Part shown: positions 6,601-44,883 of the stretch, piece by piece | How positions within the stretch are numbered: position 1 is the first letter of the stretch | Layout: every line of letters starts with the position of its first letter | From: Macrostomum lignano | Taxonomy: Eukaryota | DNA: 64,000 nt | Assembly (NCBI GenBank): GCA_002269645.1 | Contig: NIVC01000418.1 | Location: 1-64,000, forward strand | Direction of reading: 5' to 3' | Made by a program: the position numbers and the translations under genes | Notes under the pieces: generated by a model | Seen by the model: the letters and a program-made list of their open reading frames with translations, nothing else | Database searches by the model: none | Told to the model about the DNA's origin: nothing

Positions 6601-9600
6601 ACCCTTAAGCGCACCGACGGCACTGGCTTCACAGCCATCCTGGGGCTGTCGGACGCCTGGATGAGGCGTTATCCACACGGCAGCTTCATCAACGTCGGCC
6701 TTTGGAAGCTGCGCATCCGCTCCTACGAGGCCGACCCTCCCCGTGGCAGTGAGCAGGGCGGGCGGGATGCGGAGGCGGCCGGGGCCGAGGCGCAAGCCTC
6801 TGCTCAGACTGCCAAAGCAAACCGCCCTGCCCGGCAGCACGGCCGCGCGGGCAAAGCTGAGCGCGCTGCTGAGGGCGGAGGCGACCGACGCCCGGCGCGC
6901 AGCACCAAGCGGCGCGGCCTGTACCAGCGTGCAGCTGAGGCAGTCCGTACCGCCAAAATCTCCCAGCTGAGGCGAGAGGTCGCCGGGACGCCTAGGCGCA
7001 CCAGTTCGTCCAGGGAGGGTGGGGACGTCCCAGCTGGGCCCAACCCCTCGGGGCAGGGCCGACTGGAGACGGACCCGCCTGCCCAGGCGGCTGGCTGCTC
7101 CAGGGCATTGGGCCAATCTGAGGCGGAGGACCCCATGGATGGTGGGCAAAGGGCGGCGAACGCTGCCTACTGCCTTCCGGCCAATCGGGGGCCTTTTGCT
7201 GAAGAAGAGCCCATGGACACCGGCGACCCCGACCCGAAGCCGGTGAGCGCCGAGGAGGAGGAGGAACTCCTGGCGGCTGCAACATCCGATCTGCAATGAT
7301 GCCAGCGACTACCTGGTGTCTGCAGATCAACACCCAGCACTGCGTGGCGGCGTCGGTCAACCTGATGCGCACGGCAGAGCAACAGCTTCCGGGCCTGGTC
7401 TTCGTACAGGAGCCCTGGATGACTAAAGGTAAGCCAAATAATGTGCCATCTGGCTACCACTGTTTTTGCATGGCGGGCTCTCAGCCTCGCCCAAGATCTC
7501 TGGTCTTTGCTGCAAAAGCTTTTGAGGCATGGATGAGACCTGATCTCTCGACTGGGGACATCTGTGTTGTTCAAATCAATAACCTCATTCCCAATAAACC
7601 TGTGCTGGTAGCTTCTGCCTATTTCCCGGGCGATGCCCCAGTTGTCTGCGACGCGTTAGTCAACCTTACTGACTATGCTGCGTCCCATCGGTTCGAGCTG
7701 CTCATTGCAGGGGATGTGAACGCACACCACCTGCATTGGGGCAGCAAGAACATCAATAGCAGAGGCGAGGAGCTGCTGGCCTATGTCAGCAGCACTAACC
7801 TCAACTTCTGTAACGTGGGCAATGCACCAACGTTCAATAATGGGCGGTGGGCCGAAGTCATCGACACCACCATCGCCTCACCCGGACTGCTTTCCGCAGT
7901 TACGGGCTGGCGAGTGTGGGACGAGGACTCGCTCTCGGACCACCGCTTTATCCGCTTTTGCATTGGGCCGACCAAGCAAAAGCCTAAGGTCACTTGGAGT
8001 CGGAACGTCAGGAACACCGATTGGGCCGCCTTTGGCTCGAAGCTGAGCCGCGGCCTTCGGGATCTTGACCCCCCCAGTGACCTCTCTGACTGCCAGGTGG
8101 TGGACGATCTCGCCTCCTCCCTGGGCGGGGCGATCACCACTGCCTTTGAAGCAGCCTGCCCCCTAAAGGCCTATAAAGGCAAGAAATCTGCTCCCTGGTG
8201 GAACCCAGAGCTCGGGGCCCTTCGGCGCCGAGCCAGGACCCTCCAAAGGCGAGCGCTCAAAACCAAAGACCCATCTGACAGAGAGGCCTATACCCGTGCG
8301 ATCCACGAGTTTAAGGGCCAAGTCAGAAGGGCCAAGACGGCCAAGTGGCGCCAATATTGCGAAGGGCTTGAGGGCTCTCGCCCCGTAGCCCGCGTGGTTA
8401 AGGCACTCACTAATGACCGTTTTTCTAAACTCTCTGTTGTGAAGAGACCTGACGGCTCGGTCACAGAGAGTTCGGAAGAGACTCTAGAGCTCATGCTCAA
8501 CAGTTTCTTCCCTAAATCTCCGACTCAGCAGGGCCCGCCCGACCACACAGTGGGGGCAAGGCCTAGCAAAGTCTATGATCACCAAAGACCGCATTATTAG
8601 AGCGGCAAGGTCCTTTAACCCGTTCAAGGCGCCTGGGCCCGACGGCATCTACCCAGCGTTCTTGCACGAGGCGGTGAAAAACCACCGCTTCCTGGACCTG
8701 CTCTGTCGTCTCCTTCGAGCTTGTATGGAGCTGGGCTATGTACCAGTTGCATGGAGAGAGGCCCGGGTGGTCTTTATCCCCAAGCCTGGAAAGAGCGACT
8801 ACCAATCGGTGAAGGCCTTCAGGCCTATCAGCCTCACTTCTTTCTGCCTCAAGCTCCTCGAGAGACTGGTGCTTTGGCGCCTACTTTCGGTCGAGCTGAA
8901 GCGCTTCCCACTCTCGCAGAACCAGCACGCCTTCCGCGCGGGCAGGTCAACCGAGAGTGCTCTCCATGTCATTGTTGACTTCCTGGAGAGGGCCGTTCTT
9001 GGCAGCGGCTTTGCCCTCTCGCTTTTCCTGGACATTGAGGGGGCCTTCGACAACGTCATCTTCGAGGCCTTTTGCAGAGCCCTGGAATCCAGGGCCACGC
9101 ACCCTCACCTTGTCCGGTGGATCATGTTCATGATCCGAAACCGCACTGTTGTGGCCCACCTGAGCGGCAGCTCTCTTTCGGTGCCTGTCCTGAAAGGGGG
9201 CCCCCAGGGCGGCGTTCTCACCCCCGTTCTCTGGAACATGGTCATGGATGAGTTGCTTTGCAGTGATCTCCACGACCCCATTCTCAAGGTGGGCTATGCC
9301 GATGATGTGACCGCGATATGCGCGGGCCCCTCGGTTGATACCATCAGAGACCTTCTGCAGGGCTTTCTGGGACGAGCGGAGCGTTGGGCAGACCAATGTG
9401 GCCTTAGACTCTCAGAGTCGAAAACCACAGCAGTCATGTTTACCAACAAACTGCTCTGGACCATTAAGCCCCTCACCCTCTATGGAAAGAATATTTCCAT
9501 GGAAAGCAGGTCCGCTGCCTGGGCCTCACTCTGGACCACAGGCTTAACTGGACTCCGCACATTCAAACTAAAGCCAAAAAAGCCCTGGCTGTACTGGCTC

Positions 9601-12600
9601 AGATCAGGCGCGCCGTGGGCACCACCTGGGGGCTCACCCCCAGGAAGCTGTGGTGGATTTACACTGCCATCATCCGCCCCTCGATCAGTTACGCCAGCCT
9701 CGTGTGGGCTAGCGGCCTGAGCGTCAAGAGCAACCTCGACGCTCTCTACAAAATCCAGGGCAGAGCCTGCCGCATGACTATGGGCGCTCCACCCTCTACT
9801 CCTTTTGAAGGCATGAATGCCTTCCTCTGTGCCCCTCCTTTGGATATTTATATCAAAGGAGAGGCGGCGAAGAGCACCCGGCGTCTTCTGGATGCTGGGG
9901 TGGCCTTCAAGAAAGTGCGGGCCTTTAAGAAGCGGTCGCTTATCCCGCACTCTGACCTCTGCCTCAAGGCTCTCGAGGAGTGTGGCGGGCTCAACATCCT
10001 CACGGACTCGATCCCAGCCACCCTTCTCCTGAGCCAAAGGTATAAGGTCACCATTCAGCCTCGACACGAGGCGAGTGACAGCTGGAGCGACTCTGAAGTC
10101 CACTGTTACACTGACGGCTCTATGAGGCATGGTCTTTCAGGCTTCGGAGCTTGCGTCTTCTTCAAGGGAGAAGTGGTGTGGAGCTACTCCCAGCACACTG
10201 GGCTCAATTCCAGTGTTTTTCAGAGCGAGGTGCTTGCCATCAGCTCCTGCGCGGCAGAGCTGCGCCGAAGGCAGCTTAGCGGCCGGAAATTTATTTTTCA
10301 CTCTGACAGCCAAGCAGCCCTTCGGGCCCTCTGCCGCAGCACCGCCAGCTCCAGGTCCGTCCTGGACTGCAACACCCAGCTCAACGGGCTTGCGCTAGGC
10401 AACCAGGTGGAGCTCAGATGGATCCCGGGCCACGCCGGCTTCCTCGGCAACGAGCGCGCTGACCTGCTGGCCAAGGCTGGCTCCGCCGGCGCGCTATTGG
10501 GGCCGGGCCCGGGTGCCCCCATCCCCGCCTCGGTAATCAATTCCCGCGTTAAGCGCTGGGCTGACTCCGAGCATCTCCGCAGGTGGCACGACACCCGGAA
10601 TTGTAGGCAATCCCGTGCTGCCGTCCCCTGTCCCTCTCCTCTCCTGCGTAGAGCCCTCCTCAGGCTCAACCGCAGAGACCTCAGAGCAGTTAGCATGGCC
10701 CTCTCCGGGCATGGCTGCTTCTCTCGAGACCGCTTCCTTCAGGGCCAAGTACCCGAGGAGCGGTGCCCCTTCTGCCGCTCAGGCAGTGAAAACGCCGAGC
10801 ATTTTATCTGCCACTGCCCGGTTTTCACCAGGGCCAGGCTTACTCACCTCGGGCCAAACCCGGTTCTCTCCGACGTTTGCAGGCCCGAGAGCATCCCGCT
10901 GCTCGCCCGGTACCTCAGGGACACCGGACGAGCTGATTTCTTCCCCACCGTCGGTGAGGAGGACCGCGCTGCAGGCGAGACCGACGGGTCCCCCTGAGCG
11001 ACACCACTTCAACGGAAGTCGTTGGTCGCCAGGGGCTAGCGGAATGGGCGGTCTCCTCCGCCTCCTCGCTGCATCCGCCGGACGCCCCCTGCAGCTAAGT
11101 CAAGTAAGTCAAGATCCCATTGTGTCTAGATCCCATTGTGTCTAGATCCCACTGTGTCTAGATCCCATTGTGTCTAGATCCCATTGTGTCTAGATCCCAT
11201 TGTGTCTAGATCCCACTGTGTCTAGATCCCACTGTGTCTAGATCCCATTGTGCCTAGATCCCATTGTGTCTAGATCCCATTGTGTCTAGATCCCATTGTG
11301 TCTAGATCCCACTGTGCCTATTTAAAAAGTCGTTCCTAAATCCCCTAATGCCCAGAGACCACATAAACTAGCAGGGTCTAACAGATAGAACCTACCTGGT
11401 CATTAACGGCCAACACGGCCACAACACCGTAGTGACAGCACACGGAATGCCAGAGTCCCAGGGCGCACCAGATTAACAGATCTCGCCACCAGAGCAGCCT
11501 GTTAGAGGCAATAGTAATGTACAGCTCCGGCTCCTGATACAGCCGGTACCGATGCACATGCTGCTCAAAGATGCCAAAGAGCAGAATAGGCAGCGAGGTC
11601 ATAGTCATGTTATAAATGGTCAAGTAGATTGTATCATAGAGAGACTGGGCGCTGAAGCCCGAATGGAAAGCGTAGAACAGTTCGGCCGTGATGAAGGCGA
11701 CATTCTTATAGAAGAAATACTGCACCAAGGTTGCCAGGCGGACATAGTACAGGTGGCCGTGGAAAAGCAGCGCCTTTCTAAGAAACTGGAATCTGGCGAA
11801 GGCGTAGTCGGAGTTGAGCGCGGCTGCGCGGCCCTCCTTGCCGTAGAGGCCGACGCCGACGTGCGCCTCGCGGATCATCGACACGTCGTTTGCGCCGTCA
11901 CCGATGGCGCAGGTGACCGGCTTGGGCTCGACACCGTTGCGCACCTGGTTGCCAAGGAGGAGGCTTTGATCAATGGTTACCATGACAACCAGGAAACTAT
12001 ATAAAATTGCCAGTTTCATATTAAGATGAAACCGAAAACTCTGCAAAAAATCTTTAATTAGATGTTACCATGGCAACCAAAGTAGTATCTATTTTATCAT
12101 AGCAACAATATTTTCATTTTTGCCGAATAAAAATGGGCCGGTCACAATTTTTTGTGACCAAAATAATTGTGACACAGCTTCTGTCACGCTTGTGACCATC
12201 AAGTGGGACCGTGATGTGACCGTCAGTTAACTATGTGACTCTCCGATGTGACCTTGTGACTGTCAGTTAACTATGTGACTCTCTGATGTGACCGTGCGAC
12301 CGTCAGTTAACTATGTGACTCTCCGATGTGACCGTGTGACCGTCAGTTAACTATGTGACTCTCCTATGTGACCATGTGACCGTCAGTTAACTATGTGACT
12401 CACCGATGTGACCTTGTGACCGTCAGTTAACTATGTGACTCTCCGATGTGACCGTGTGACCATCAGTTAACTATGTGACTCTCCGATGTGACCGTGTGAC
12501 CGTCAGTTAACTATGTGACTCTCCGATGTGACCGTGTGACCGTCAGTTAACTATGTGACTCTCCGATGTGACCGTGTGACCGTCAGTTAACTATGTGACT

Positions 12601-24411: not shown

Positions 24412-25630
24412 ATGGAGCCAGAACTGCATCTACTTCCAAAAGATTTGTCCATTTATGAGCATCAAGTTGCGGGTCACGGGTATTCACAAAGATGTGGTAA
24501 GTCCATTTCAATTAAAACATACTCCTTATTACATTTCCAATCCAAGCATAAACTATATAAATTTAATAAATAATGTTCAACATTTTAGAGCAAAATCCTG
24601 TCAAGACAAAGCCACAATGTAAGTTATTTTTATTTGATAAATTCGATGTAAAGGCATATATCCATTTATGAATAATTTATCATCTGCATACAGTTTTGTG
24701 TGCAGTTTTGCATACAGTTTTGTGTATTTTTAATTTTCAATTATTATTTATTAGTGTATGCAGATAGACTTCCTAATCGATTTTCATGCCTGAAATTTTG
24801 AGTGAAGCAATAATTATTCAAGAATTCTTTCAATTCGCTTGTTTCCTACGATTTTTTTTCTAAAATTATCTAAAAGGATTGTCTGTCCATTAACAGGTCA
24901 CTCATTACTAGCTGCATGGTTCTTAGACATTGTCTCGTAATGTATTTATTTCCTCTGGGAATTCTCAACCGCAGTAGCGGATCCAAAAAAATGCGCGACA
25001 GCAAATGCCTTACTTTACTTAATTCTCGTACTTACTCTCATAACTGTCCTAGTAAGGCACCCTCAGTGTAGCGCCAGTTTATGTTGTGCCATTATTGAGA
25101 TGCCTGAAGCATTGCGCCCACAGCGCTCATTGTTGGCATTTGTGAGTTCATTTGTGTGAAATCATTGTGGGAATTCCGTACTCCCCATGACACCTTTAGT
25201 GCTGCATTCCCACGACGAGCGCTGCATCTACAAGCCGGTCCAGGGGGCGCCTAAAGGAGATCGCGAAATCCAATTCTACCGTGAAGTGTTCAATGAAAAA
25301 GTTGCTACCTGTCGCGATCCCGATCTTGCCGAGCTGCGCTGCCTTCTGCCAACCTTCCGCGGGGTGCACATCGACGCCGCCACTGGCCGGCGCTACCTTC
25401 GCTTGGACGACCTGCTGGCCGACTTTGTGCAGCCGTCGGTGATGGATCTGAAGATGGGCGCGCAGAGCTACGAACCGGACGCGTCTGAGAGGAAGCGTTC
25501 GGTGGAGCTGGCGAAGTACGAGCACCGGGCCAGGGTCGGCTTCCTGGTCACCGGGCTGCGGGCTTGGCGACAGGAACGGCAGTCCTACGAGCAGCTGGGA
25601 AGCGGCACTGGGCCAAGGTGCGAGTCCTGC

Positions 25631-25705
<75 letters not shown>

Positions 25706-26503
25706 GTCTATCTATCTATCTATCGATCTAATCTATTTCTAACTAAAACTTACCTGCCTCAGGTGACGCCCGACCGCCTGCAATCCGACGTGATGCCTCC
25801 CTTTCTGTCATCGGTGCCTCGTGGCGTCCACCGTCGCCGAGCAGTTCGCCAGCTGCTCAACCAGCTGGAGCGCCTGCAGGCGTGGTTCGAGCGCCAGACC
25901 CTGTACCATTTCTACGCCAGCTCCGTGCTGCTGGCGGTGGAGTCCTGCCCGGCTGCTCTGGACGATGTGTCGTCCGAGGCTTCGTCTCTTGACGATAGCG
26001 GCTCGCCAGAGATTCCAGCGTCGCCGCAACCGCAACTGTACGGAGAGACCAATGCCACGGACCCTTCAGCGTCGCCTGCAGCCGGTAACAAAGACTCATG
26101 TTCGTCAGGAATCCAAGAGTGTGAAAGTGCTGCAGGTAACAAAGACTCATGTTCGTCAGGAATCCAAGAGTCTGATGGTGCTGCAGGTAACAAAGACCCG
26201 CAGTTATCGGCTCATGCACAAAGGCATGACATTGATGAACTGTCAGCGGATGAGGCACCGGAAGCGCCGCCAAAGGTCCAGTTTGCATCTTCCCCTCAGT
26301 CGCAGTCTTCCATAGACCCGTCGCTAAACTCCGAGTCCACCTCGCGCTACTCAAACGCTAATAATTGCGGCAGGGCGCCAATTGCGCTAGCGGCTATGAT
26401 CGATTTTACGCACGCGGTGCCTGGCAACGGTTGCCTTGACAACAATTATCTGGTTGGATTGCGCAGTCTTATTGAACTTCTGCGCAATTATCAGTTTGAT
26501 TAA
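24412..26503 (+). CDS. IPMK: Inositol polyphosphate multikinase
   Basis: Exons 24412-24496 (HQVAGH), probable 30-nt microexon 24589-24618, 25200-25617 (PSVMDLKMG = PxxxDxKxG), 25763-26503 (YASSVLL = SSLL motif, MIDFTH). Splicing out 25618-25762 needs one extra base near 25600 to stay in frame. Confidence 0.9.
25633..25725. repeat. (TCTG)n/(TCTA)n in an IPMK intron
   Basis: Direct reading. Confidence 0.9.
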
Positions 26504-28565: not shown

Positions 28566-28888
28566 TCAGCCGTTCGATCTGACGTTGCCCTCCTGACCGG
28601 CCTCTGCAAGTCAGCGGTGTGAAATTGTCTCAGTCAGGTGCAGCCAAAAACAGGAAATCTAAAAGCAGAAATGCTCAAAGCAGCAGTGAGTCACTCACCT
28701 CTGACCCGCTCTATCAGGTCCGGATTGGTGATGACGCAGCTGATGCTGGGCTGCACGAGAACCCTGGCTGAGGCGCCGACCATTCGGCGTAGCATCGCCT
28801 TCGACTCTTCGCTCTCGCCCTTGTAATAGAAGAATCTGAACGGGTCCTTGGCGACTGGCCTGGCGGATCTGGCTTGCTGGCTGGACAT
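28566..28888 (-). CDS. Unrecognised 75-aa small protein, cluster copy 1
   Basis: Exon 1 28888-28699, 95-nt GT-AG intron, exon 2 28603-28566: MSSQQARSARPVAKDPFRFFYYKGESEESKAMLRRMVGASARVLVQPSISCVITNPDLIERVREAGQEGNVRSNG*. Frame, splice sites and stop are conserved with the other copies. Confidence 0.65.
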
Positions 28889-29387
28889 TGCTAGCGGTTG
28901 AACTGAGGATAATTAGTGCTTAAAACAGTGCGCTCTGCTTAGACTTGCTTTTGGCAGCAGAATCTTCTATATATATATATATATATACATGTGTACAGTA
29001 GAGCCCAGTTGATGAAACCAGGCAGAATTCTTTGGGATACCCTCTTATATGCTATTATGAGTCATATTCAAGGTTAGTGTTCTGTTTTTAAGCATAATGT
29101 GCAGTCTTAGCAGTCTACCCCATCGAGCTTTGTATGGAATTTCTCGGAGCATACTGCTCGCTGCTCGTTCTAAATTTTACTTTCTAATTTTGGTAGCTCG
29201 GCTATTGTGAACAGGGGTAATCTTCCCGCCCCCATGAGTTTGGCTGCAATAAAATTCTGCAAGACTTCCAGCAGACTTGAATAGTTCGACAAAAATATCG
29301 GCTACTGGTTCGAGCTTCGATTTATGAAATTAACCCTTGAACTTATTCTTCCGCACACAGAAATGAACTTCCTGACTAAAGTTTGTT

Positions 29388-29985
29388 CGCTCAGAGATTG
29401 CTTGAGACCATCTGCTCAGAGATTGCTTGAGACCGTCTGGTCAGAGATTGCTTGAGACCGTCTGCTCAGAGATTGCTTGAGACCATCTGCTCAGAGATTG
29501 CTTGAGACCGTCTGCTCAGAGATTGCTTGAGACCGTCTGCTCAGAGATTGCTTGAGACCATCTGCTCAGAGATTGCTTGAGACCGTCTGCTCAGAGATTG
29601 CGTGAGACCATCTGCTCAGAGATTGCTTGAGACCGTCTGGTCAGAGATTGCTTGAGACCGTCTGCTCAGAGATTGCTTGAGACCGTCTGCTCAGAGATTG
29701 CTTGAGACCGTCTGGTCAGAGATTGCTTGAGACCGTCTGCTCAGAGATTGCTTGAGACCGTCTGCTCAGAGATTGCTTGAGACCGTCTGGTCAGAGATTG
29801 CTTGAGACCATCTGCTCACAGATTGCTTGAGACCGTCTGCTCAGAGATTGTGTGAGACCATCTGCTCAGAGATTGCTTGAGACCGTCTGGTCAGAGATTG
29901 CTTGAGACCGTCTGCTCAGAGATTGCTTGAGACCGTCTGCTCAGAGATTGCTTGAGACCGTCTGGTCAGAGATTGCTTGAGACTC
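29388..29985. repeat. 25-bp minisatellite
   Basis: (AGAGATTGCTTGAGACCGTCTGCTC)n. Confidence 0.93.
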
Positions 29986-31201
29986 AGCGACTGACTCACT
30001 GTGACAGCCTTTCCTACAGTGCTTCTGCATCACCGCAACTCCTCTCTGTAGCGCGGTAAGAGGCCGGCGGGAAAGTCCAATGCTGGTACTTCTTCCTCCC
30101 AAGCAAAGTTCCTGATGTCGCGAGGACACAATACTTCCTGCTGGCTGTTGGCTGAGGACAAATTGCGACTTGGCGAGCAACAACCAAATCGCCACGCTAC
30201 ACCTGGCAGTGAGAAGGAGGAAGTCGCTATGTAGGTTCCGGACGGGAATGAGCAGCCTATGAATGACCAACAGGAAGCTGGGCTTGCACCGCGCTGGAGA
30301 GCGGCGTGCACCTGATTGTTTTGCGCCATGATCTGTTAGTGTTCAATTAATTGTATTGGAGTTCTAACTGACAAGGCACTTTGATGGCTTTGTTTATTCG
30401 CATTCCATGACCTTCACTTGATAATTTCTTCTTACATGCACAACTCCTCTCTTATCGAAAAGGGGACATGTTATGCAGTGCGATCCTGAAGTTGGTATCG
30501 TAGAAATCAGTGTCGTATATCAGTCGTAGTCCGTTCATTGCTTTTTGTTCTTACTAGCAAAAGCAATGCTTCATCAAGGCATTGATCACTTTTACTACAG
30601 CTTCAAACGGCACTCAACCAAAAATGTCCTAGAAATTTCCTATCAAGAATCCAGCACAGGCTCAGTCCCAGTTTATATTAGCAACCATCAAGCGGCCTGA
30701 GAAACGAGGAGGACTGCGAGATCAAAGATACCTTACGAGAACAGGACCTCTTGAAAGTGCCATGTGCAGGGTATACAGAGATAAATTCTAAGTTGAATTT
30801 TAAAACACTTACCGTCACTCAAGGAGAAGACGATAGAGACATACGAGCAATGGAATTTCTAGCAAAATTAATCAGAGACATAAATGCAACTGGTCTCAAG
30901 AGCTTCATATTGGCTTCAGAAATTAGCGCAAGATTTATATTTTTTATTTATTAGACTTCCTGCATTTATACGAAGTGTTTTTCTTTCATTAAAAATATCA
31001 AATATATAATTTTATCTAAACAGCACCAAAAGAAATTCTAGTGTAGTGAGGTACTGAATTCGCTCAAGATTTCTCTTAGCAGACAGACAAAAACGCTTTT
31101 TTAAGCTTTTAAGCTTAACTTGGCTCCTCCATCCGAAGCTGTCACTTATATAAACAGGCATGACGTCATCAAATCTCGAGCTGTCCTGACACTCCAGTCG
31201 C

Positions 31202-31517
31202 TCAGCCGCTCGACCTGTCGTTGCCTTTCTGATTGGACTCTGAAAGTCAAAGTCAAAGGACTCTGTGAAATTTTCTCAGTCACGTGCAACCAAAAGAGGA
31301 AATGTGAAAGCAGAAATGCTCAAAGCAACAGCAGTGAGTCACTCACCTCTGACCCGCTCCATCAGGTCCGGATTGGTGATGACGCAGCTGATGCTGGGCT
31401 GCACGAGAACCCTGGCTGAGGCGCCGACCATTCGGCGTAGCATCGCCTTCGACTCTTCGCTCTCGCCCTTGTAGTAGAAGAACCTGAACGGGTCCTTGGC
31501 GACTGGCCTGGCGGATC
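31202..31517 (-). pseudogene. Small-protein cluster copy 2; 5' end replaced, no in-frame ATG at the homologous position
   Basis: Homology to the other copies starts at ~31517 (SARPVAKDPF...); donor at 31346; exon 2 31239-31202 (ESNQKGNDRSSG*) is intact. Confidence 0.5.
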
Positions 31518-31987
31518 CGATAAGGACTGCGAGACCATAAGGATCCTTACTTGAACAGGGCCAGCTCAAAGTGCCATTTGGGAGTAGAAAGTGAAGTTCA
31601 CTTCCTGCTCAAGTGTAATTGGAACTCCCCGTGATAAACTCGAACAGATCAAAGAGAATAAAGTATTGTACTCGTGAAGACGTAATGAAAATTCTAACAA
31701 AACTCTTTGATTTAATAGCTTTTTTATTTATATTTTTCTTTCATTTTCTAATGCTTAATATTAGTTCGAAAGAATCATAAATTATACACATATGCAAGCA
31801 TAAAATATCTATACAACACAGAAAGCAATCATAGTGTGTAGTGAGATGTTAAATTTGCTCAAAATTTGCCTGAGCAGACAAGCAATGAACACTGGTCTAA
31901 AAGCTGAACACTTGGTTCCTCAATCCGAAGCTGTCACTCATAAATAGACATGCGTAATATCTCGAGCTATCCTGACACTCCAGTCGC

Positions 31988-32304
31988 TCAGCCGCTCGAC
32001 CTGCTGTTGCCCTTCTGTCAGACTCTGCAAGTCAGTGAAATTGCCTCAGTAAGGTTGCAACCCAAAAAGGAAATCTGAAAGCAGAAATGCTCAAAGCAGC
32101 AGTGAGTCACTCACCTCTGACCCGCTCCATCAGGTCCGGATTGGTGATGACGCAGCTGATGCTGGGCTGCACGAGAACCCTGGCTGAGGCGCCGACCATT
32201 CGGCGTAGCATCGCCTTCGACTCTTCGCTCTCGCCCTTGTAGTAGAAGAACCTGAACGGGTCCTTGGCGACTGGCCTGGCGGATCTGGCTTGCTGGCTGG
32301 ACAT
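31988..32304 (-). CDS. Small-protein cluster copy 3; 1-bp deletion in exon 2
   Basis: Exon 1 32304-32115 encodes the same peptide as copies 4 and 6. Exon 2 starts at 32024 and reads AGTCTGAC-AGAAGG versus AGTCTGACCAGAAGG in copies 4/6, so the usual stop is out of frame. Confidence 0.55.
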
Positions 32305-32604
32305 TGTTAGCGATTTGAGTTGCTGCAACACTTGCTGCTTCTTGAAGAGTATGATTCTTCAGTTTTCTGATGAGAGTTCAAAGTCGTGAACTCAGTTTAT
32401 TTATGCTGAAGCGATGGCGAGTCTTGGGCCGCACCTCGGCAAAACCCGCGAATTTCGCAATGTGTGGGCGAGGGAATTCCGTGGGCGCGAAGTAGCTAAA
32501 AATAGAAACAGCTGTAATGACTAACCGTGGCAAATTTTTCGCTCTGCAATTTTCGCTTTCATTCAGCGAAACTCATGAATAAACCAAGAGATATGCAAGG
32601 TTCG

Positions 32605-33121
<517 letters not shown>

Positions 33122-33535
33122 GGAGACTTACCTTCACACGAGCGCAGTTAACTAAATGCGCACTTCCTTACAGCCTTCCTGTGGGTGAATACGAGCTCTG
33201 TGCATGGAGCAGGGGTTTGGGGTGCCCCAACTTAAAATCCAAGCTGATGCGTTGCAATGAGTCAGACGAAAGTTTCCAATGCTACATTTCCAGATGTCTC
33301 TCGATACAACAAGTCGAACTACGTAGCTATTTTGAGCAATTATGCAGCAAAGAGATCTTAGCAACGATTCAACAGAGCATGTAGCCATTTATTATAGGCA
33401 CAGTAAGCATGTGGATAATCGAAACATTTATTGATACGCGCATCTCAGAGATTGCAAGCAGCTAGCAAGGTGTTGTCTGGTGATAAGAAATTCTGTAGCT
33501 GACTCGCTTGAATGCTGCTAGTAGGGACTGAACCA

Positions 33536-33898
33536 GTGCCAGTCACTCCGATCTCAATCTACAGTCAGTGAAAGTGACTCCGATCTCAATCTACAGTCAG
33601 TGCCAGTCACTCCAATCTCATTCTAAAGTCATTGCGAGCCACTCCGATCTCAATCTACAGTCAGTGCCAGTCACTCTGATCTCAATCTACAGTCAGTGCC
33701 AGTCACTCCAATCTCAATCTATAGTCAGTTCCAGTCACTCCGATCTCAATCTATAGTCAGTGCCAGTCACTCCAATCTCAATCTATAGTCAGTGCGAGCC
33801 ACTCCGATCTCAATCTACAGTCAGTGCCAGTCACTCCAATCTCAATCTACAGTCAGTGCCAGTCACTCGGATCTCAATCTACAGTAAGTGCCAGTGAC
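33536..33898 (+). repeat. 32-bp minisatellite
   Basis: CAGTCACTCCGATCTCAATCTACAGTCAGTGC; same family inverted at 39963-41472. Confidence 0.92.
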
Positions 33899-34221
33899 TT
33901 CGCCAATTATTTTTTTTCACTACAAGCTAAAACTTTTAGAAAGTATTTTAGAATAACGGACTTGTTGCCAAGAAAGCAAAAAGAAGAAATTATTGACGTA
34001 TTGAAAATCCAATACTGCAATAAAAGCAATGTTACCCAGGCCAAGGAATTTATTGTTCATACATTTTATAAGCAGAGATGAGTCCGAGTCTGTACAGAGC
34101 AGTGCTCAGCTCGAGCAGAGAAAGCATTTATTTGACTCAATGCGTTTCAATTGTAAGCTATTGTCATTTGAAATCTATGCACAAAAAGGCATGACATCAT
34201 ATAAGGGATGTCCTCCGGCGC

Positions 34222-34544
34222 TCAGCCGCTCGACCTGACGTTGCCCTTCTGGTCAGACTCTGCAAGTCAGCGGTGTGAAATTGTCTCAGTCAGGTGCAGC
34301 CAAAAACAGGAAATCTAAAAGCAGAAATGCTCAAAGCAGCTGTGAGTCACTCACCTCTGACCCGCTCCATCAGGTCCGGATTGGTGATGACGCAGCTGAT
34401 GCTGGGCTGCACGAGAACCCTGGCTGAGGCGCCGACCATTCGGCGTAGCATCGCCTTCGACTCTTCGCTCTCGCCCTTGTAGTAGAAGAACCTGAACGGG
34501 TCCTTGGCGACTGGCCTGGCGGATCTGGCTTGCTGGCTGGACAT
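34222..34544 (-). CDS. Small-protein cluster copy 4 (75 aa)
   Basis: Same 323-bp span and two-exon structure as copy 1; C-terminus ESDQKGNVRSSG*. Confidence 0.65.
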
Positions 34545-35067
34545 TGTTGACGGTGGCTTGTAAATTAATTTGCGGTGGCTTTGAATTGAAGCTTCTGAGT
34601 CTTCTGGAGCTGGTTCATGGATTTACAGTCGGTGGGAGATCTCGTATTTATAAGCATTTCCCTTATTAGGTTCTACCGCGTAAAAGCCTGCATGTTCTGC
34701 AAGAGCAGAGTAATTTTAGCAATTACGACTCGTAATTGCTAAAAATAGCATCCTAAGGGTTCCCCGGTGTACACTGCATAGAATGTACACTCCGCCCTCA
34801 GAGCTGGGTTACAGGGTACGACCTACTGAAAACTATCGTGTACTACCTTGTAGTAGATATAGCTATGGCGAAAATTTTATTTTTATGCATTAATTGACTG
34901 GGTAGCGACTTTTCTGACTGGGTACGATTTTTTAGTAAACATTTAGGCTGTTGCAATAGTAACGAGAATGTTTTTGCAATATTCAGTATTTTATATAGCT
35001 TATGAGTGCTTTCTCCTTGATTAACCAATTCTTGCACGAAGTTCACGCGCTGCATTTTGTTGAATAG

Positions 35068-35790
35068 TCTCTGAGGTCACTCTGTTTTTCATGGGGTAGA
35101 CTCTGAGGTCACTCTCTGTGTTTCATGGGATAGACTCTAAGGTCACTCTCTTTGTTTCATGGGATAGTCTCTGAGGTCACTCTCTGTATTTCATGGGATA
35201 GATTCTAAGGTCACTCTCTTTGTTTCATGGGATAGACTCTGAGGTCACTCTCTGTGTTTCATGGGATGGTCTCTGAGGTCACTCTGTTTTTCATGGGGTA
35301 GACTCTGAGGTCACTCTCTGTGCTTCATAGGGTAGACTCTGAGGTCACTCTGTGTTTCATGGGGTAGACTCTGAGTTCACTCTGTGTTTCATGGGGTAGA
35401 CTCTGAGGTCACTCTGTGTTTCATGGGGTAGACTCTGAGGTCACTCTGTGTTTCATGGGGTAGACTCTGAGGTCACTCTCTTTGTTTCATGGGGTAGATT
35501 CTGAGGTCACTCTCTGTGTTTCATGGGGTAGACTCTGAGGTCACTCTGTGTTTCATGGGGTAGACTCTGAGGTCACTCTCTTTGTTTCATGGGGTAGATT
35601 CTGAGGTCACTCTCTGTGTTTCATGGGGTAGACTCTGAGGTCACTCTCTGTGCTTCATGGGGTAGATTCTGAGGTCACTCTCTGTGTTTCATGGGGTAGA
35701 CTCTGAGTTCACTCTCTTTGTTTCATGGGATAGTCTCTGAGGTCACTCTCTGTGTTTCATTGGATAGTCTCTGAGGTCACTCTCTGTGTT
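35068..35790. repeat. 32-34-bp minisatellite
   Basis: CTCTGAGGTCACTCT(CT)GTGTTTCATGGGGTAGA. Confidence 0.92.
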
Positions 35791-36046
35791 TCGTGGGATC
35801 GACTCATGGGATAATGATGGTGCATTTTCATATTTACTAATCAATATTTCTATACAAAACGCGGTATTACCTTCGTCAGAAGCGCGAATAAGTGGTACTA
35901 CTGCGTTAGTGTTATAGTGCACTGGTAAACCCACGTCTGGAAAGCGTAAGGTCTAAAAATAGAACCAGGAAGTACCCTGTGAGGTCAGTAGCAGCTGGCG
36001 ACAGTTCTACACCAAATTCTTGTGTTTTAAATAGCCTTGGTTATCT

Positions 36047-36950
36047 GCTGAAGGGTTTGAAGGTCTCCTGATAAAGGGTTTGAAGGTCTCCTGATGAAGG
36101 GTTTGAAGGTTTCATTATGAATGGTTTGAAGGTCTCCTGATAAAGGGTTTGAACGTCTCCTGATAAAGGATTTGAAGGTCTCCTGATGAAGGGTTTGAAG
36201 GTTTCATGATGAAGGGTTTGAAAGTCTCCTGATGAAGGGTTTGAAGGTTTCATGATGAAGGGTTTGAAGGTTTCATGATAAAGGGTTTGAAGGTTTCATG
36301 ATAAAGGGTTTGAATGTCTCCTGGTGAAGGGTTTGAAGGTTTCATGATAAAGGGTTTGAATGTCTCCTGATGAAGGGTTTGAAGGTCTCCTGATGAAGGG
36401 TTTGAAGGTTTCATGATGAAGGGTTTGAAGGTCTCCCGATGAAGGGCTTGAAGGTTTAATGATGAAGGGTTTGAAAGTCTCCTGATGAAGGGTTTGAAGG
36501 TTTCATGATAAAGGCTTTGAAGGTCTCCTGATGAAGGGCTTGAAAGTTTCATTATGAAGGATTTGAAGGTTTCATGATGAAGGATTTGAAGGTTTCATGA
36601 TGAAGGATTTGAAGGTTTCATGATGAAGGGTTTGAAGGTTTCATGATGAAGGATTTGAAGGTTTCATGATGAAGGGTTTGAAGGTTTCATGATGAAGGGC
36701 TTGAGGGTTTCATGATGAAGGGCTTGAAGGTTTCATGATGAATGGCTTGAAGGTTTCATGATGAAGGGCTTGAAGGTTTCATGATGAAGGGCTTGAAGGT
36801 TTCATGATGAAGGATTTGAAGGTTTCATTATGAAGGGCTTGAAGGTTTCATGATGAAGGGCTTGAAGGTTTCATGATGAAGGGCTTGAAGGTTTCATGAT
36901 GAAGGATTTGAAAGTTTCATGATGAAGGGTTTGAAAGTCTCCTGGTCCGA
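36047..36950. repeat. 23-bp minisatellite
   Basis: (GAAGGGTTTGAAGGTTTCATGAT)n. Confidence 0.93.
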
Positions 36951-37477
36951 ATGGTCTGAGTTCACCTCAGGAAATTCCTGAAGGGCTATCTGTGAATCCT
37001 AAAGTCTGGGTTGGAAGTGCTTTAGCCCACACTTACCAAGAATTTCGAATTTATAAAATGATGTCATAACTAACACAGCCAGCTCATAGAGTACTTGGCT
37101 TTGAAAAAATTGCTTTAAAAGTTGTTATAGTTTGTTTCTTAAAGAAAAACTACTGGTCCGTTTACAGCAAAAAGCACGAGCCCTCAAAGCACAAGTTCTA
37201 TCTGACTTAAAATGTCAGCATCGTCTTTGAGCCTCGGCATCTCAGTTATTAGAAACATATAAAGCCTATAGTGCACTTCAATGGCCTTAACGAGAAGCCG
37301 CTAAGCTGATAGCATTCCTACAAGGCAGTAGCCATTTCTGGATTGGATCATAGCCAAAAATAAAATAAGGACTAAGTACTACCTTGTACCATAAGGCTGT
37401 AGATACGAGCATTGCAATGATCCACGGTGTGCTAAAAATAGAACAGGGTATTACCTAGTAATATACACAGGGTGCTG

Positions 37478-37685
<208 letters not shown>

Positions 37686-37971
37686 TGAATTTATAAAGAC
37701 ACTTTATTATCTCAATGCAACAGCAAGACTGCAAGGCCAGACTCTACAAGGCAGTGCCCTGTTTCTCCCCAAGCCGAGTGAATTGTGTTCGCCCCAACAC
37801 GGCACCGGCGTCACTCACCGAAATGAGGTCTCAGATAGCGCACAGTGGGACCAGAATACGAGGTAGTGCCCAGTTTCAAGTGGGTTCAATACGCACTGCA
37901 GCTGCCTGGGCCAAGAAGCTTAGACAGTCGTTCGTTAGTTCGCTGTTCACGCCCTGACGAAGGACAGCAGA

Positions 37972-38479
37972 ATGGCTGGTAAGCAACCACGCGATCCGTT
38001 CAAAGATTTCTATATGCCAGGTGAAAGCGAGGAGTCCAAGGAGGAGCTCAGGAGAAATACTGCAGCAACTGCTACTCAACTGGTTCAGCCTACGCCGTCT
38101 GCAATTTTTACTAATCCTGAGCTCATTGCCAAGATTGATGCAGGTAGAATGCGTTGGTTTCCATTCTGTCCTGTCCTGTCCTGTCCTGTCCTGTCCTCTC
38201 CTGTCCTGTCCTGTCCTGTCCTGTCCTGTCCTGTCCTGTCCTGTCCTCTCCTGTCCTGTCCTGTCCTGTCCTCTCCTGTCCTCTCCTGTCCTGTCCTCTC
38301 CTGTCCTGTCTTGTCCTGATATAATCCGTTCATTTTTGCACAGATCGACGTACCAAGAAACAATCAAACTTATTTCAGCAAAGAAGGAGAAAGCAGAGCA
38401 AGAGAAGCAACAGCAGGAGCAGACTAAGCCAAAAGACTCAACCGGAAGTAGTGGGAGCTCCTCTGGCAAAACAGATTGA
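37972..38479 (+). CDS. Diverged small-protein paralog, copy 5 (~90 aa)
   Basis: Exon 1 37972-38143 MAGKQPRDPFKDFYMPGESEESKEELRRNTAATATQLVQPTPSAIFTNPELIAKIDA; phase-1 intron containing (CTGTC)n; probable exon 2 38379-38479 AKKEKAEQEKQQQEQTKPKDSTGSSGSSSGKTD*. Confidence 0.6.
38165..38317. repeat. (CTGTC)n in the intron of small-protein copy 5
   Basis: Direct reading. Confidence 0.93.
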
Positions 38480-38757
38480 TGATTCGAGCGGTCCACAAAT
38501 ACTGACATCAAGCCTTATGGCTCACATCCTTTGCTGAATAATATTTGATCTACCATTTAATTCAATTTGGTGAATTCAAGAAGTCCAGATAATTTTTTGT
38601 GCTTTTTCTTAATTAGCGACCAAATTTTGCATGCAATTTTCACCGAATACAAACTGTGCAAATCTGCTTTAGAATGTTTCCAATTTGACAGACAAAGCAA
38701 AAAGGAATTATTTGTGATTAAGGGGCCAACAAGCACCTCTGTGAATCTAAGAATCAT

Positions 38758-38960
38758 AGGGTGTCTGTCCCTGAGAATGGGAGCTAGGGTGTCTGTCCTT
38801 GATAATGGGAGCTTGGGTGTCTGTCCCTGAGAATGGGAGCTAGGGTGTCTGTCCCTGAGAATGGGAGCTAGGGTGTCTGTCCTTGAGAATGGGAGCTTGG
38901 GTGTCTGTCCCTGAGAATGGGAGAGTGTCCGTCCCTGAGAATGGGAGAGTGTCTGTCTGT
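38758..38960. repeat. ~28-29-bp minisatellite
   Basis: GGGTGTCTGTCCCTGAGAATGGGAGCTA units. Confidence 0.88.
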
Positions 38961-39319
38961 CACCCTGCAAATCTCTTGGTCTTTCCGAATGATTCCAAAG
39001 TCATCTACCACTAATTGTCTCCAGTTGACAGTGCTTAAAAGAAACAAAAGGGAAAATTGAAGAGCAAAATACTTACCACAGTCAGTCATTACAGCTGTTT
39101 CTATTTTTACGTAGCTACGAGCGTACTTTATAACCCACGGAATTCCCGCGCTCACACATTGCAAAGTGCGCTGGTTTTTCCGAGGTGCAGCCGAAGACTC
39201 GCCATCGCTTCAGCATAAATATTGTAAATTCTGTTCGAGACTTTGAACTCTCATCAGAAAACTGAAGAATCATACTCTTCAAGAAGCAGCAATTGTTGCA
39301 GCAACTCAAATCACTAGCA

Positions 39320-39642
39320 ATGTCCAGCCAGCAAGCCAGATCCGCCAGGCCAGTCGCCAAGGACCCGTTCAGGTTCTTCTACTACAAGGGCGAGAGCGAA
39401 GAGTCGAAGGCGATGCTACGCCGAATGGTCGGCGCCTCAGCCAGGGTTCTCGTGCAGCCCAGCATCAGCTGCGTCATCACCAATCCGGACCTGATGGAGC
39501 GGGTCAGAGGTGAGTGACTCACTGCTGCTTTGAGCATTTCTGCTTTTAGATTTCCTGTTTTTGGCTGCACCTGACTGAGACAATTTCACACCGCTGACTT
39601 GCAGAGTCTGACCAGAAGGGCAACGTCAGGTCGAGCGGCTGA
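39320..39642 (+). CDS. Small-protein cluster copy 6 (75 aa), inverted relative to copies 1-4
   Basis: Near-identical reverse complement of copy 4, including intron and exon 2. Confidence 0.65.
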
Positions 39643-39962
39643 GCGCCGGAGGACATCCCTTATATGATGTCATGCCTTTTTGTGCATAGATTTCAAATGA
39701 CAATAGCTTACAATGGAAACGCATTGAGTCAAATAAATGCTTTCTCTGCTCGAGCTGAGCACTGCTCTGTACAGACTCGGACTCATCTCTGCTTATAAAA
39801 TGTATGAACAATAAATTCCTTGGCCTGAGTAACATTGCTTTTATTGCAGTATTGGATTTTCAATACGTCAAAAATTTCTTTTTTTTGCTTTCTTGGCAAC
39901 AAGTCCATTATTCTAAAATACTTTCTAATAGTTTTAGCTTGTGGTGAAAAAATAATTGGCAA

Positions 39963-41472
39963 AGTGACTGGCGCTGACTGTAGATTGAGATTGGAGTGAC
40001 TGGCACTGACTATAGATTGAGATTGGAGTGACTGGCACTGACTATAGATGGAGACTGGAGTGACTTTCACCGACTGTAGATTGAGATAAGAGTGACTGGC
40101 ACTGACTATAGATTGAGATTGGAGTGACTTTCACTGACTGTAGATTGAGATTGGAGTGACTGACACTGACTGTAGATTGAGATTGGAGTGAGTTTCACTG
40201 ACTGTGAGATCGGAGTGACTGGCACTGACTATAGATTGAGATTGGAGTGACTTTCACTGACTGTAGATTGAGATCGGAGTGACTGGCACTGACTATAGAT
40301 TTAGATCGGAGTGACTGGCACTGACTATAGATTGAGATTGGAGTGACTTTCACTGACTGTAGATTGAGATTGGAGTGACTGACACTGACTGTAGATTGAG
40401 ATTGGAGTGAGTTTCACTGACTGTGAGATCGGAGTGACTGGCACTGACTATAGATTGAGATTGGAGTGACTTTCACTGACTGTAGATTGAGATCGGAGTG
40501 ACTGGCACTGACTATAGATTTAGATCGGAGTGACTGGCACTGACTATAAATTGAGATCAGAGTGACTTTCACTGACTGTAGATTGAGATCGGAGTGACTG
40601 GCACTGACTGTAGATTGAGATTGGAGTGACTGGCACTGACTATAGATTGAGATTTGAGTGGGTTTCACTGACTATAGATTGAGATTGGAGTGACTGGCAC
40701 TGACTGTAGATTGAGATCGGAGTGACTGACACTGACTGAAGATTGAGATCAGAGTGACTGGCACTGACTCTAGATTGAGATTGGAGTGACTTTCACCGAC
40801 TGTAGATTCAGATTGGAGTGACTGGCACTGACTATAGATTGAGATTGGAGTGAGTTTCACTGACTATAGATTGAGATTGGAGTGACTGGCACTGACTGTA
40901 GATTGAGATTAGAGTGACTGGCACTGACTGTAGATTGAGATCGGAGTGACTTTTACTGACTGTAGATTGAGATTGGAGTGGCTTTCATCGACTGTAGATT
41001 GAGATTGGAGTGACTGACACTGACTGAAGATTGAGATCAGAGTGACTGGCACTGACTATAGATTGAGATTGGAGTGAGTTTCACTGACTATAGATTGAGA
41101 TTGGAGTGACTGGCACTGACTGTAGATTGAGATTATAGTGACTGGCACTGACTGTAGATTGAGATCGGAGTGACTTTTACTGACTGAAGATTGAGATCAG
41201 AGTGACTGGCACTGACTATAGATTGAGATTGGAGTGACTGGCACTGACTATAGATTGAGATCGGAGTGACTGGCACTGACTATAGATTGAGATCGGAGTG
41301 ACTGGAACTGACTATAGATTGAGATTGGAGTGACTGGCACTGACTGTAGATTGAGATTGGAGTGACTGACACTGACTGAAGATTGAGATCAGAGTGACTG
41401 GCACTGACTGTAGATTGAGATTGGAGTGACTTTCATCGACTGTAGATTGAGATTGGAGTGACTGGCACTGAC
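39963..41472 (-). repeat. 32-bp minisatellite, inverted and expanded copy
   Basis: Reverse complement of the 33536-33898 unit. Confidence 0.93.
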
Positions 41473-41899
41473 TTATCACGTTAACGTAGTGCGTTACTGC
41501 TGGCTAGGTACACTAATACTTCATGCAATTATTATTTGCTTGAAACGTTTCTTTGATAAAATTAAACTGGCGAAACTAAGTCACGCCATATGGAGCTGGC
41601 AGATATTCTTTCTTCAATATACAGTGTAGTGTATTTTTAGTCCTAAACGGGTTTATATAAAATTTCCAGTAAATAAAAGACTAGTGTCGCCTCTTATTAC
41701 TTTAGTCGTCCTCAATTACTACATTTACACTTACCTGTAGTACGAACTTTATACGTTGCAGAAGAATTACGCTATTTCTGAAAAATTTCAGAAGATTCAC
41801 GCATTTGTAGAAAAGTGCAAACGGACGCTTGCGGGAGAAGCGACACGAAGGAAGGCTACGTGGATCGGAGGGAAGGCCACCACGGAAACGGAGCTAATC

Positions 41900-43300: not shown

Positions 43301-44883
43301 TCACAGACTGCATTGGTTGAACGTGCAGTTTTGCATAACGAAGATGTTCTTGCCATTTGGATGAGCGTTTGCGAAGTTGACCGCCTCCTGGACCGTTGAG
43401 CTCTGGATGTTGACTGGGCACACGCTCGTGTTGATTGCTGGGCTATCTGTTGTACTGGCTGATGGGCACGCGCTCGTAATAACATGGCCGTTTGAATCAG
43501 GTGTAGTGTTTTTCTCCATGTCCAGTACCTTGGTTACGGCGTCGCTGCACTTCTTTAGCACCTTGTCACGTCTGATTGAGAGATATCGGCGAACGGTTTT
43601 TTCGCACTTCTGGCCAGTTATCGCCATGATGTCGGCCATGGAATGCCCAGCTGCTTCTAAGTCGCACACCCTGCTGACTCTAAAATATTGGGCAAACGGT
43701 ATTACACAATTGTAAGCATCTTGAGGCATTGCCTAAAGGCTAAATTAAGCTACACCTTTGGCAAAGGAGATTTACCTGATGCAGTGGTTGGTGTAAACTT
43801 TGGATAGCTTGGCCTTCCCACTCAGCGTCTTCATAAAGTTGTTGAGATAGTTTACGCCTCTCTTCTGCTTAGCACAAAACCGCCGTGCTCCAGTCGGCGA
43901 ATTTCTTAGCGGTCTTGGGAACAGAGAATTGTCCTTCGTTTCACCAGGCAGGAGAGACAAATACTCATCTATAATTGCTGTGTCATATATCCTGGCCTGC
44001 TTGATTTCGACGTCTCTTTTGGCTTTCGCCGGATCAGCTGTCCTGTTCTTGGTCTTCGACGATGATAGTGCGTAGTATATCCTTCCGTCTGAGTCGCTTT
44101 CTCTAACCAATCCTTTGTCTCCAAGCTCGCAAGGTGCTCTCTGCCTCGTTCTCCCAGTCCGTACAGCAGCCGAAACAGCATCTCGTCCTGTGTAACTTCG
44201 GCAGTTGAGCGGTCAAAGTAAAGACGCAGCTTTTGCATGTCTCCTTCCTCAATTGGAGGAAACGGTCGAACCTGACCTCCTGAGGATTGCCACTCACGGA
44301 CTTTGAACCGCAGTAGACGATTAGCTCCGGAAAATTCTTCTTCGCTAAGAATGTTAATGTTGAGTCCCGCAATCATTGTCAAATAGCGTTGGATTCCAGC
44401 ACGTATGCAGACTAGGCTTGACGGCGAATAGCTGCCTCCGTCAGCGCGTCGTAGTTTGAAATAGAAATACCTCAGAAACTCTGCCAGCGTGGCAGTAGTC
44501 AATTCGTGCACGGCTGCTCCATGCTCAGCTAGAAAGTTGACAAAACTTGAGCCGTATGCCAACATCTGCTCCCGAGTCTTGCTCGGCAAACTTGCAACTT
44601 CTTCGCGTGCCATCGTTTCAGTTATATCGAGCGGCACTGCCGGTCCTTCGGTCATGCATGAGACTTCTTCCACGTCTTCATTTTCATCCGGTAGCAACGG
44701 CAATTCGTCACTTGCTCCTCCCTCTTCGATGTACTTGATAAATGTGGCTAGGTCTTCGTCAACTGCGAAGTCGTTTCCCGAAGTCGATAGCATTGAAATA
44801 AAATCCATTTCGGAGCGTGTGACACCAGAGAGACAACTAATCGGCAAGTTAGCCCAGTTAATCAGATGCACTTGGTCTGCCAT
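43301..44883 (-). CDS. Tyrosine recombinase of Crypton/DUF3504 type; one 96-nt intron and one frameshift (~44112)
   Basis: N-domain LAEFLRYFYFKLRRADGGSYSPSSLVCIRAGIQRYL; catalytic R in GERGREHL; YTNHCIR spans intron 43775-43680 (GT-AG) and continues VSRVCDLEAAGHSMADIMAITGQKCEKTVRRY (HxxR, TG-x, catalytic Y). Confidence 0.85.

Follow-up and report, generated by a model that had tools for sequence, protein, structure and literature searches.

We examined bases 1-64000 of contig NIVC01000418.1 from the Macrostomum lignano genome assembly Mlig_3_7 (GCA_002269645.1), a stretch of 64,000 nucleotides (nt) called here the window, in which a cluster of small genes with two coding exons lies between an IPK kinase gene and a Crypton-like open reading frame (ORF). 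The cluster is composed of five near-identical copies (A, C, B, D and E) and one diverged copy (F), whose coordinates are collected in Table 1 together with those of the other features of the window. A tblastn search with the peptide encoded by exon 1 found exactly six loci, the close copies being matched with E-values of 1e-34 to 1e-39. The next-best match had an E-value of only 1.5, and nothing else fell below 1, so that the six loci are far beyond chance. The five close copies and one diverged copy of a two-exon gene that an earlier note on this DNA had described were thus all recovered.

Table 1. Gene copies and other features of the window, with the matches of the exon-1 peptide in tblastn.
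Feature	Position	Strand	tblastn match	Details
Copy A	28566-28888	-	28888-28700, exon-1 peptide	exon 1 28699-28888; intron 28604-28698 (95 nt); exon 2 with stop 28566-28603
Copy C, 5'-truncated	31202-31517	-	31515-31348, residues 8-63 only	exon-1 remnant 31347-31517; intron 31240-31346 (107 nt); exon 2 31202-31239
Copy B	31897-32304	-	32304-32116, exon-1 peptide	exon 1 32115-32304; intron 32025-32114 (90 nt); frameshifted exon 2
Copy D	34222-34544	-	34544-34356, exon-1 peptide	exon 1 34355-34544; intron 34260-34354 (95 nt); exon 2 34222-34259
Copy F	37972-38479	+	37957-38136, 48% identity, E 3.5e-15	exon 1 37972-38143; intron 38144-38378 (235 nt); exon 2 38379-38479
Copy E	39320-39642	+	39320-39508, exon-1 peptide	exon 1 39320-39509; intron 39510-39604 (95 nt); exon 2 39605-39642
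Distal 5' exon of the annotated D transcript	37038-37067	-		ATG, MTSFYKFEIL, then GTAAGT donor
Left inverted-repeat arm	33912-34546			635 nt, 99% complementary to 39318-39952; holds copy D
Right inverted-repeat arm	39318-39952			635 nt; holds copy E
IPK-domain ORF	25187-26503	+		
LINE-type retrotransposon	6154-10997	+		consecutive ORFs with endonuclease/exonuclease/phosphatase, reverse-transcriptase and RNase H domains
Crypton-like ORF	43972-44883	-		304 aa; sub-threshold QRICH1-domain match, E 9e-5, 22.9 bits against a cut-off of 30.8
Mini- or microsatellite	29389-29983			period 25
Mini- or microsatellite	32608-33121			period 4
Mini- or microsatellite	33534-33899			period 32
Mini- or microsatellite	35065-35805			period 34
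Mini- or microsatellite	36049-36935			period 23
Mini- or microsatellite	37478-37686			period 4
Mini- or microsatellite	38166-38318			period 5
Mini- or microsatellite	38757-38947			period 28
Mini- or microsatellite	39963-41473			period 32

Explicit splicing models place a phase-1 intron (GTGAGT...CAG) directly after codon 63 in all five close copies, in agreement with the phase-1 GT-AG intron read in the earlier note, and the ATG is kept in four of the five, again as stated there. Copies A, D and E each encode a product of 75 amino acids (aa), D from the ATG common to the close copies. The tail encoded by exon 2 is EAGQEGNVRSNG in A, ESNQKGNDRSSG in C and ESDQKGNVRSSG in both D and E, a variation that had been correctly listed. 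Two of the close copies carry lesions. The exon-1 remnant of copy C comprises about codons 7-63, the first six or so codons being gone, and exon 2 of copy B bears a 1-nt deletion whose frameshift leads to a 105-aa product with a stop at 31897, where the usual stop would lie at about 31988. The claim that the exon-2 stop position is retained therefore holds for A, C, D and E and fails for B. Similarly, the intron length of 95 nt given earlier applies to A, D and E, the intron being 90 nt in B, 107 nt in C and 235 nt in F. When read without splicing, every close copy still yields a 65-aa ORF ending in ...ERVRGE. Copy F is a diverged, acidic paralogue of 90 aa, the product of which is identical to PAA83466.1; its intron, also of phase 1, contains a (CTGTC)n microsatellite and is located one codon further 3' in the alignment than that of the close copies.

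Copies D and E, together with their 3' flanks, are contained in the arms of a 635-nt inverted repeat that bracket F and run on into related 32-bp minisatellites. These 32-bp arrays (33534-33899 and 39963-41473) are related to one another in inverted orientation and lengthen the palindrome, and satellite arrays fill much of the space between the copies. Inspection by eye of the region just 3' of the copy C stop (31140-31180, minus strand) revealed a palindromic stretch resembling a cAMP response element (CRE), TGACGTCA, followed 7 nt further on by TTATATAA, on the gene strand; degenerate versions follow the stops of B, D and E. On the plus strand, TATA-like boxes precede the complemented stop codon by about 25-35 nt. 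These CRE-like and TATA-like stretches could be a promoter for a downstream or antisense transcript.

The family was presented in the earlier note as unrecognised, a description that does not stand, as its members are already deposited in GenBank and UniProt as hypothetical proteins: PAA71355/PAA71356 (NIVC01001170.1), PAA75435-PAA75439 (NIVC01000884.1) and PAA83466/PAA83467 (NIVC01000418.1). The GenBank models are 75, 90 and 107 aa long and their introns are identical to those modelled here. The Mlig_3_7 annotation rests solely on transcripts assembled from RNA-seq data, by StringTie and TACO and also de novo, in which TransDecoder called the ORFs (PMC5730564). Since the deposited 75-aa and 90-aa products need exactly the modelled introns, spliced transcripts exist for at least some of the copies, which is the outcome of the check on splicing that had been proposed. 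The M. lignano hypothetical proteins BOX15_Mlig001698 g1/g3/g5, Mlig006971g1, Mlig032648g1 and Mlig011580g1 (75-107 aa), and Mlig003009 g1/g2 and Mlig003409g1 (90 aa), are the same genes or their sister-contig counterparts; these entries show no sequence difference from the cluster and carry no function. The 75-aa sequence common to D and E corresponds to P0004 (MetaClust UPI0007A16516), and copy A differs by one residue from its sister-contig counterpart PAA75439.1.

In NIVC01000418.1 itself only D and F are annotated, so that the suggestion of genes missed by annotation is right for A, B, C and E, which are without a database entry, and wrong for D and F. Transcripts overlapping the repeat annotation were discarded before Mlig_3_7 was submitted (PMC5730564), and the locus offers a lesson for annotation, as filtering on repeat overlap and on multi-mapping reads left four of the six copies of this contig unannotated. 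The GenBank model of D (PAA83467.1, 107 aa) spans 34222-37067 and contains the 75-aa sequence; its first coding exon is a distal 5' exon, separated from copy D by about 2.4 kb of upstream sequence with two minisatellites. This exon is unique, no counterpart having been found near the other copies. It should be noted that the distal exon of D (minus strand, from 37067) and the start of F (plus strand, 37972) point apart across about 900 bp with a (TCTA)n array (37038-37972), which may be a shared divergent promoter region.

The gene order IPK-A-C-B-D-F-E is common to three sister contigs, which hold 5, 5 and 6 close copies, and all the copies in the assembly are found at this one syntenic locus beside the IPK gene. 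Around 31.0-32.3 kb, identity to the window is about 99% for NIVC01000884.1 (L003/L004) and about 90-97% for NIVC01001170.1 (L001). The assembly thus has the locus in three versions that diverge to two different degrees, in agreement with the redundancy and hidden polyploidy that have been reported for the DV1 line. An extra copy, X, lies between B and D in NIVC01000884.1. Copy C is intact in both sister contigs, and the window version has lost 1.3-1.8 kb including the promoter, the 5' untranslated region (UTR) and the ATG, a deletion that is possibly an assembly artefact. The frameshift in exon 2 of copy B is also present in contig 884 and is absent from L001.

To assess coding constraint, F was compared with copy D over 55 aligned codons (Nei-Gojobori), which gave proportions of non-synonymous (pN) and synonymous (pS) differences of 0.33 and 0.96, respectively. 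Synonymous sites are thus saturated, but all family members have 25 invariant residues in common, which is the mark of long-term purifying selection at the protein level. This comparison was used instead of the dN/dS test among copies put forward earlier, as the close copies have only six variable exon-1 sites (pN/pS 0.45). Among the five window copies, 3 of 169 sites vary in exon 1 compared to 17 of 89 in the intron and 10 of 37 in exon 2, exon 1 being about 10 times less variable than the intron. Exon 1 differs from the intron or from exon 2 with a Fisher p of about 2e-6, and intron and exon 2 are indistinguishable. The constrained part is therefore the exon-1 core; the 12-residue exon-2 tail varies per site about as much as the intron (pN/pS 0.32 on just 12 codons). 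The reading frame is intact in 14 of the 16 close copies on the three contigs. These results show that the family is made of genuine protein-coding genes for small proteins.

The same data bear on the possibility that the copies are transcribed but functionless, a young ORF having travelled with segmental duplications in a recently polyploid genome rich in repeats, so that identity would reflect recent duplication only. Such an origin would sit well with the free variation of the intron and of exon 2, with one truncated and one frameshifted copy, with a pN/pS that is calculated on only six sites in the close copies and with the many M. lignano genes that have no homologues. However, recent duplication cannot explain why exon 1 is about tenfold less variable than the adjacent intron and exon 2, nor why the flanks are non-homologous between paralogues. 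The residues kept between F and the close copies despite saturated synonymous sites and the frames that remain open likewise argue against it, and we consider this explanation unlikely.

Three alignments were made, of ten copies with their flanks, of 14 copies (from the window, L001 and L003) and of 15 copies with an intact start, including those of contig 884. The stretch that is homologous between paralogues starts about 11 nt before the ATG and weakens over the distal half of the intron, conservation reaching about 50 nt into the latter; homology stops shortly past the stop codon, and the flanks of different paralogues are unrelated. Three classes can be told apart among the 5' regions and three among the 3' regions, and these are combined differently from copy to copy to yield a mosaic. 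The pS of exon 1 is 0.012, that is, 6-7 times below the mean pairwise divergence of the intron (0.075 in the 14 copies; 0.089 within the window), and that of exon 2 is 0.24. Copy E is a chimera of a B-type 5' flank (95%) with a D-type intron, exon 2 and 3' flank (99%). In L001, the flanks of copy d are of the A type, but a main-type tract runs through exon 1 and the intron and stops inside exon 2 after two thirds of its length, giving the tail ESDQKGNVR-SNG. The substitution R7G is confined to the adjacent paralogues A and C of contig 884, the corresponding copies of the other contigs lacking it. Gene conversion predicts both mosaic tracts and a substitution that two paralogues of a single contig have in common.

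Taken together, these observations show that the 75-aa paralogues evolve in concert, exon 1 being probably homogenised by ectopic gene conversion. The GC content at third codon positions (GC3) is 0.84 in the close copies compared to 0.44 in F, a difference that fits GC-biased gene conversion; selection on codon usage is a possible alternative source of this excess. The truncated copy C, the frameshifted copy B and the extra copy X show that copy gain and loss occur on top of homogenisation. Accordingly, the birth-and-death amplification proposed in the earlier note is borne out as far as gain and loss are concerned, but it is overshadowed by concerted evolution through gene conversion, the dominant process. 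Multigene families of the tandem or ampliconic kind that undergo concerted evolution are a well-known class. The present array resembles them in its near-identical coding block despite diverged flanks, its mosaic tracts, its 99% inverted-repeat arms, its raised GC3 and a copy number that varies between sister contigs; it differs in being small (5-6 copies), with short units and a homogenised tract of only about 250 bp. The locus thereby provides a compact and well-resolved example of gene conversion in a flatworm genome with hidden polyploidy; the tract ends are mapped and the shift in GC3 is strong.

The low pS of exon 1 could also be read in another way, namely that exon 1 and the 5' half of the intron are preserved for a role of the nucleotide sequence itself, for instance as a DNA element or as a regulatory or structured RNA, the ORF being secondary in the amplified copies. 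Among the paralogues, the synonymous sites of exon 1 are indeed as conserved as the non-synonymous ones, and the conserved block runs beyond the coding sequence into the intron. Yet a search of Rfam over 27.5-42.5 kb returned nothing, and the comparison of F with the close copies displays the classic coding pattern in which third positions have changed and amino acids are kept. The mosaic tracts and the substitution found in two paralogues of a single contig are, as said above, expected from gene conversion, and the high GC3 agrees with a GC bias of that process. A nucleotide-level function thus appears clearly unlikely as the main cause.

The core described in the earlier note is invariant in all family members and reads D-P-F..FY..GESEESK..LRR...A.A..LVQP..S...TNP.L or, with its spacing, DPF-x2-FY-x2-GESEESK-x2-LRR-x8-LVQP-x6-TNP-x-L. 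It is encoded by exon 1, an example of the core peptide being AMLRRMVGASAR. The proteins are 8-10 kDa in size, with an isoelectric point of 10.0 for the 75-aa form compared to 5.5 for F. No hydrophobic segment was found, the maximum Kyte-Doolittle mean over 19 residues being 1.29, in line with the earlier statement that there is no transmembrane segment. AlphaFold2 predicts helices at residues 27-44 and 56-69 in the 75-aa protein, with a mean predicted local distance difference test (pLDDT) of 64 and a predicted template-modelling score (pTM) of 0.32, and helices at 20-34, 42-47 and 49-72 in F (pLDDT 69, pTM 0.26); neither model has strands.

Homology searches agreed with the earlier view that the family is lineage-specific and belongs to no known family. 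A word-index search of 5.8 billion clusters returned only M. lignano proteins, in one cluster for the 75-aa product and another for the 90-aa product. A profile hidden Markov model (HMM) search of 1.84 billion representatives returned only the M. lignano clusters P0001 and P0002 and one spurious match, a bacterial repeat protein of 7511 aa (E 7e-4) that was rejected as it matches FYYWNG-type repeats. In Pfam, both protein types gave only a sub-threshold match to Tla3_C (E 0.028, 14.9 bits against a cut-off of 24.8), rejected as chance, and NCBIfam gave nothing meaningful. The best match in a profile search of PDB sequences, an Hsp70-like segment (E 0.64), was likewise rejected, and Foldseek found no match in the PDB for the F model, which is of low confidence.

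Two known families have nevertheless to be considered, as the proteins might be diverged PKI-like kinase inhibitors or TIR-domain proteins. UniRef names two 75-aa members (A0A1I8HSH8 and A0A1I8H8P9; P0008 and P0009) 'TIR domain-containing protein'. The TIR domain has an alpha/beta fold with five strands and a length of about 125-150 aa, so that 75 aa amount to about half of it. No TIR match was obtained in Pfam at E up to 10, hhalign against the MyD88 TIR domain gave a probability of 0.1%, and the AlphaFold2 models are strandless; the UniRef name looks like an artefact of automatic annotation. PKI has in common with the present proteins a size of about 75 aa and a soluble, largely unstructured character. 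PKI carries an N-terminal aromatic (Phe) motif followed by Arg-Arg-Asn, its RRNA standing at a place broadly similar to the RRNT of F; alignment did not support this resemblance. PKI (PF02827) was not matched in Pfam at E up to 10, and BLASTP of F against human PKI-alpha produced no alignment at E up to 100. The pseudosubstrate site R-R-N-A-I with a basic P-6 is not kept, F having LRRNTA and the close copies LRRMVG with only LRR invariant. The spacing of the motifs also differs, and RRNT is replaced by RRMV in the amplified copies. Membership of either family is therefore very improbable.

Elsewhere in the window, the LINE-type retrotransposon (LINE, long interspersed nuclear element) occupies a GC-rich stretch (6154-10997, 58-63%) of a composition clearly unlike that of the rest, and the Crypton-like ORF with its QRICH1 match may be what the earlier note called the recombinase element. 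These two elements, and the repeats that adjoin every copy, raise the question of whether the two-exon unit belongs to a transposable element or travels with one. The copies, however, all lie at the single locus beside IPK on the three sister contigs, homology reaches no further than about 11 nt before the ATG and a short distance past the stop, with flanks that differ for each copy, and the units have neither terminal repeats nor a transposon ORF. A mobile origin, a possibility that the earlier note had itself raised, is thus about as improbable as a place in the PKI or TIR families.

We therefore favour, with a probability of about 0.7, a Macrostomum-restricted family of small soluble proteins that is constrained and homogenised over exon 1 by conversion, and whose members would act as partner-binding peptides. 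The basic 75-aa members are amplified locally, in tandem and inverted orientation, separated by mini- and microsatellites and beside the single acidic 90-aa F. Exon 1, from about position -11 relative to the ATG into the first half of the intron, is kept nearly identical, with promoters, 5' UTRs, distal intron, exon 2 and 3' flanks falling in differing and differently combined classes, and occasional deletions, frameshifts and extra copies are superimposed. Ectopic gene conversion would be the homogeniser, its GC bias raising GC3. Amplification may serve dosage. Two predicted helices in a low-confidence chain, with no signal peptide or membrane segment and no fold match, are what would be expected of a binding or regulatory peptide, and the protein may dock on a partner through its invariant core, as a motif-bearing peptide rather than an enzyme or a secreted factor.

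Several points weigh against this interpretation. The six variable exon-1 sites of the close copies are too few to show current selection at the protein level on the amplified subfamily. The near-identity of exon-1 synonymous sites could come from selection on the nucleotide sequence rather than from conversion. The description of the protein as helical and disordered is weak, as the models behind it are of low confidence and come from very shallow alignments. Outside M. lignano no homologue was detected, but the database searched probably does not include transcriptomes of other Macrostomum species and of other free-living flatworms. Finally, no expression-level, tissue or protein-level evidence was found, the identifiers Mlig001698, 003009, 011580, 006971, 032648 and 003409 being absent from the searchable full texts and from the supplements of PMC5730564, PMC5816591, PMC12896417, PMC12801592, PMC10786194 and PMC7336406.

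The sequences themselves were already public as hypothetical proteins, and what is new is descriptive: a full inventory of the copies with four unannotated ones, a constrained core as opposed to a free tail, conversion tracts, the GC3 shift, and the lesions in B and C. Macrostomum-specific sequences account for 35% of protein clusters and 44% of transcript clusters in M. lignano (PMC5816591). Because orphan genes make up a third or more of its gene set, current understanding is unchanged, and to call the cluster the best candidate for an undescribed host system was too strong, as nothing points to a particular system. A point of comparison is the Mlig-sperm1 family (Mlig020950), a flatworm-specific germline gene family with planarian homologues and a demonstrated function in the testis (PMC5816591). 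It is likewise a lineage-restricted, multi-copy M. lignano family without a Pfam match, but it is an unrelated gene, and its planarian homologues and testis function are not matched by the present family.

It is conceivable, although we would give it little credence, that the invariant core is a new docking or pseudosubstrate-type module, and that amplification of the basic 75-aa subfamily provides large amounts of a stoichiometric inhibitor or regulator that acts on a conserved enzyme or complex, by analogy with PKI or endosulfine, in one tissue such as the germline. If so, the cluster would represent a new family of small regulators specific to macrostomid flatworms. As exon 1 is identical, one double-stranded RNA would knock down all the amplified copies together. 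If a defined partner exists, the family would offer a tractable system in which to follow the origin of a small lineage-specific protein, its amplification and the upkeep of its uniformity.

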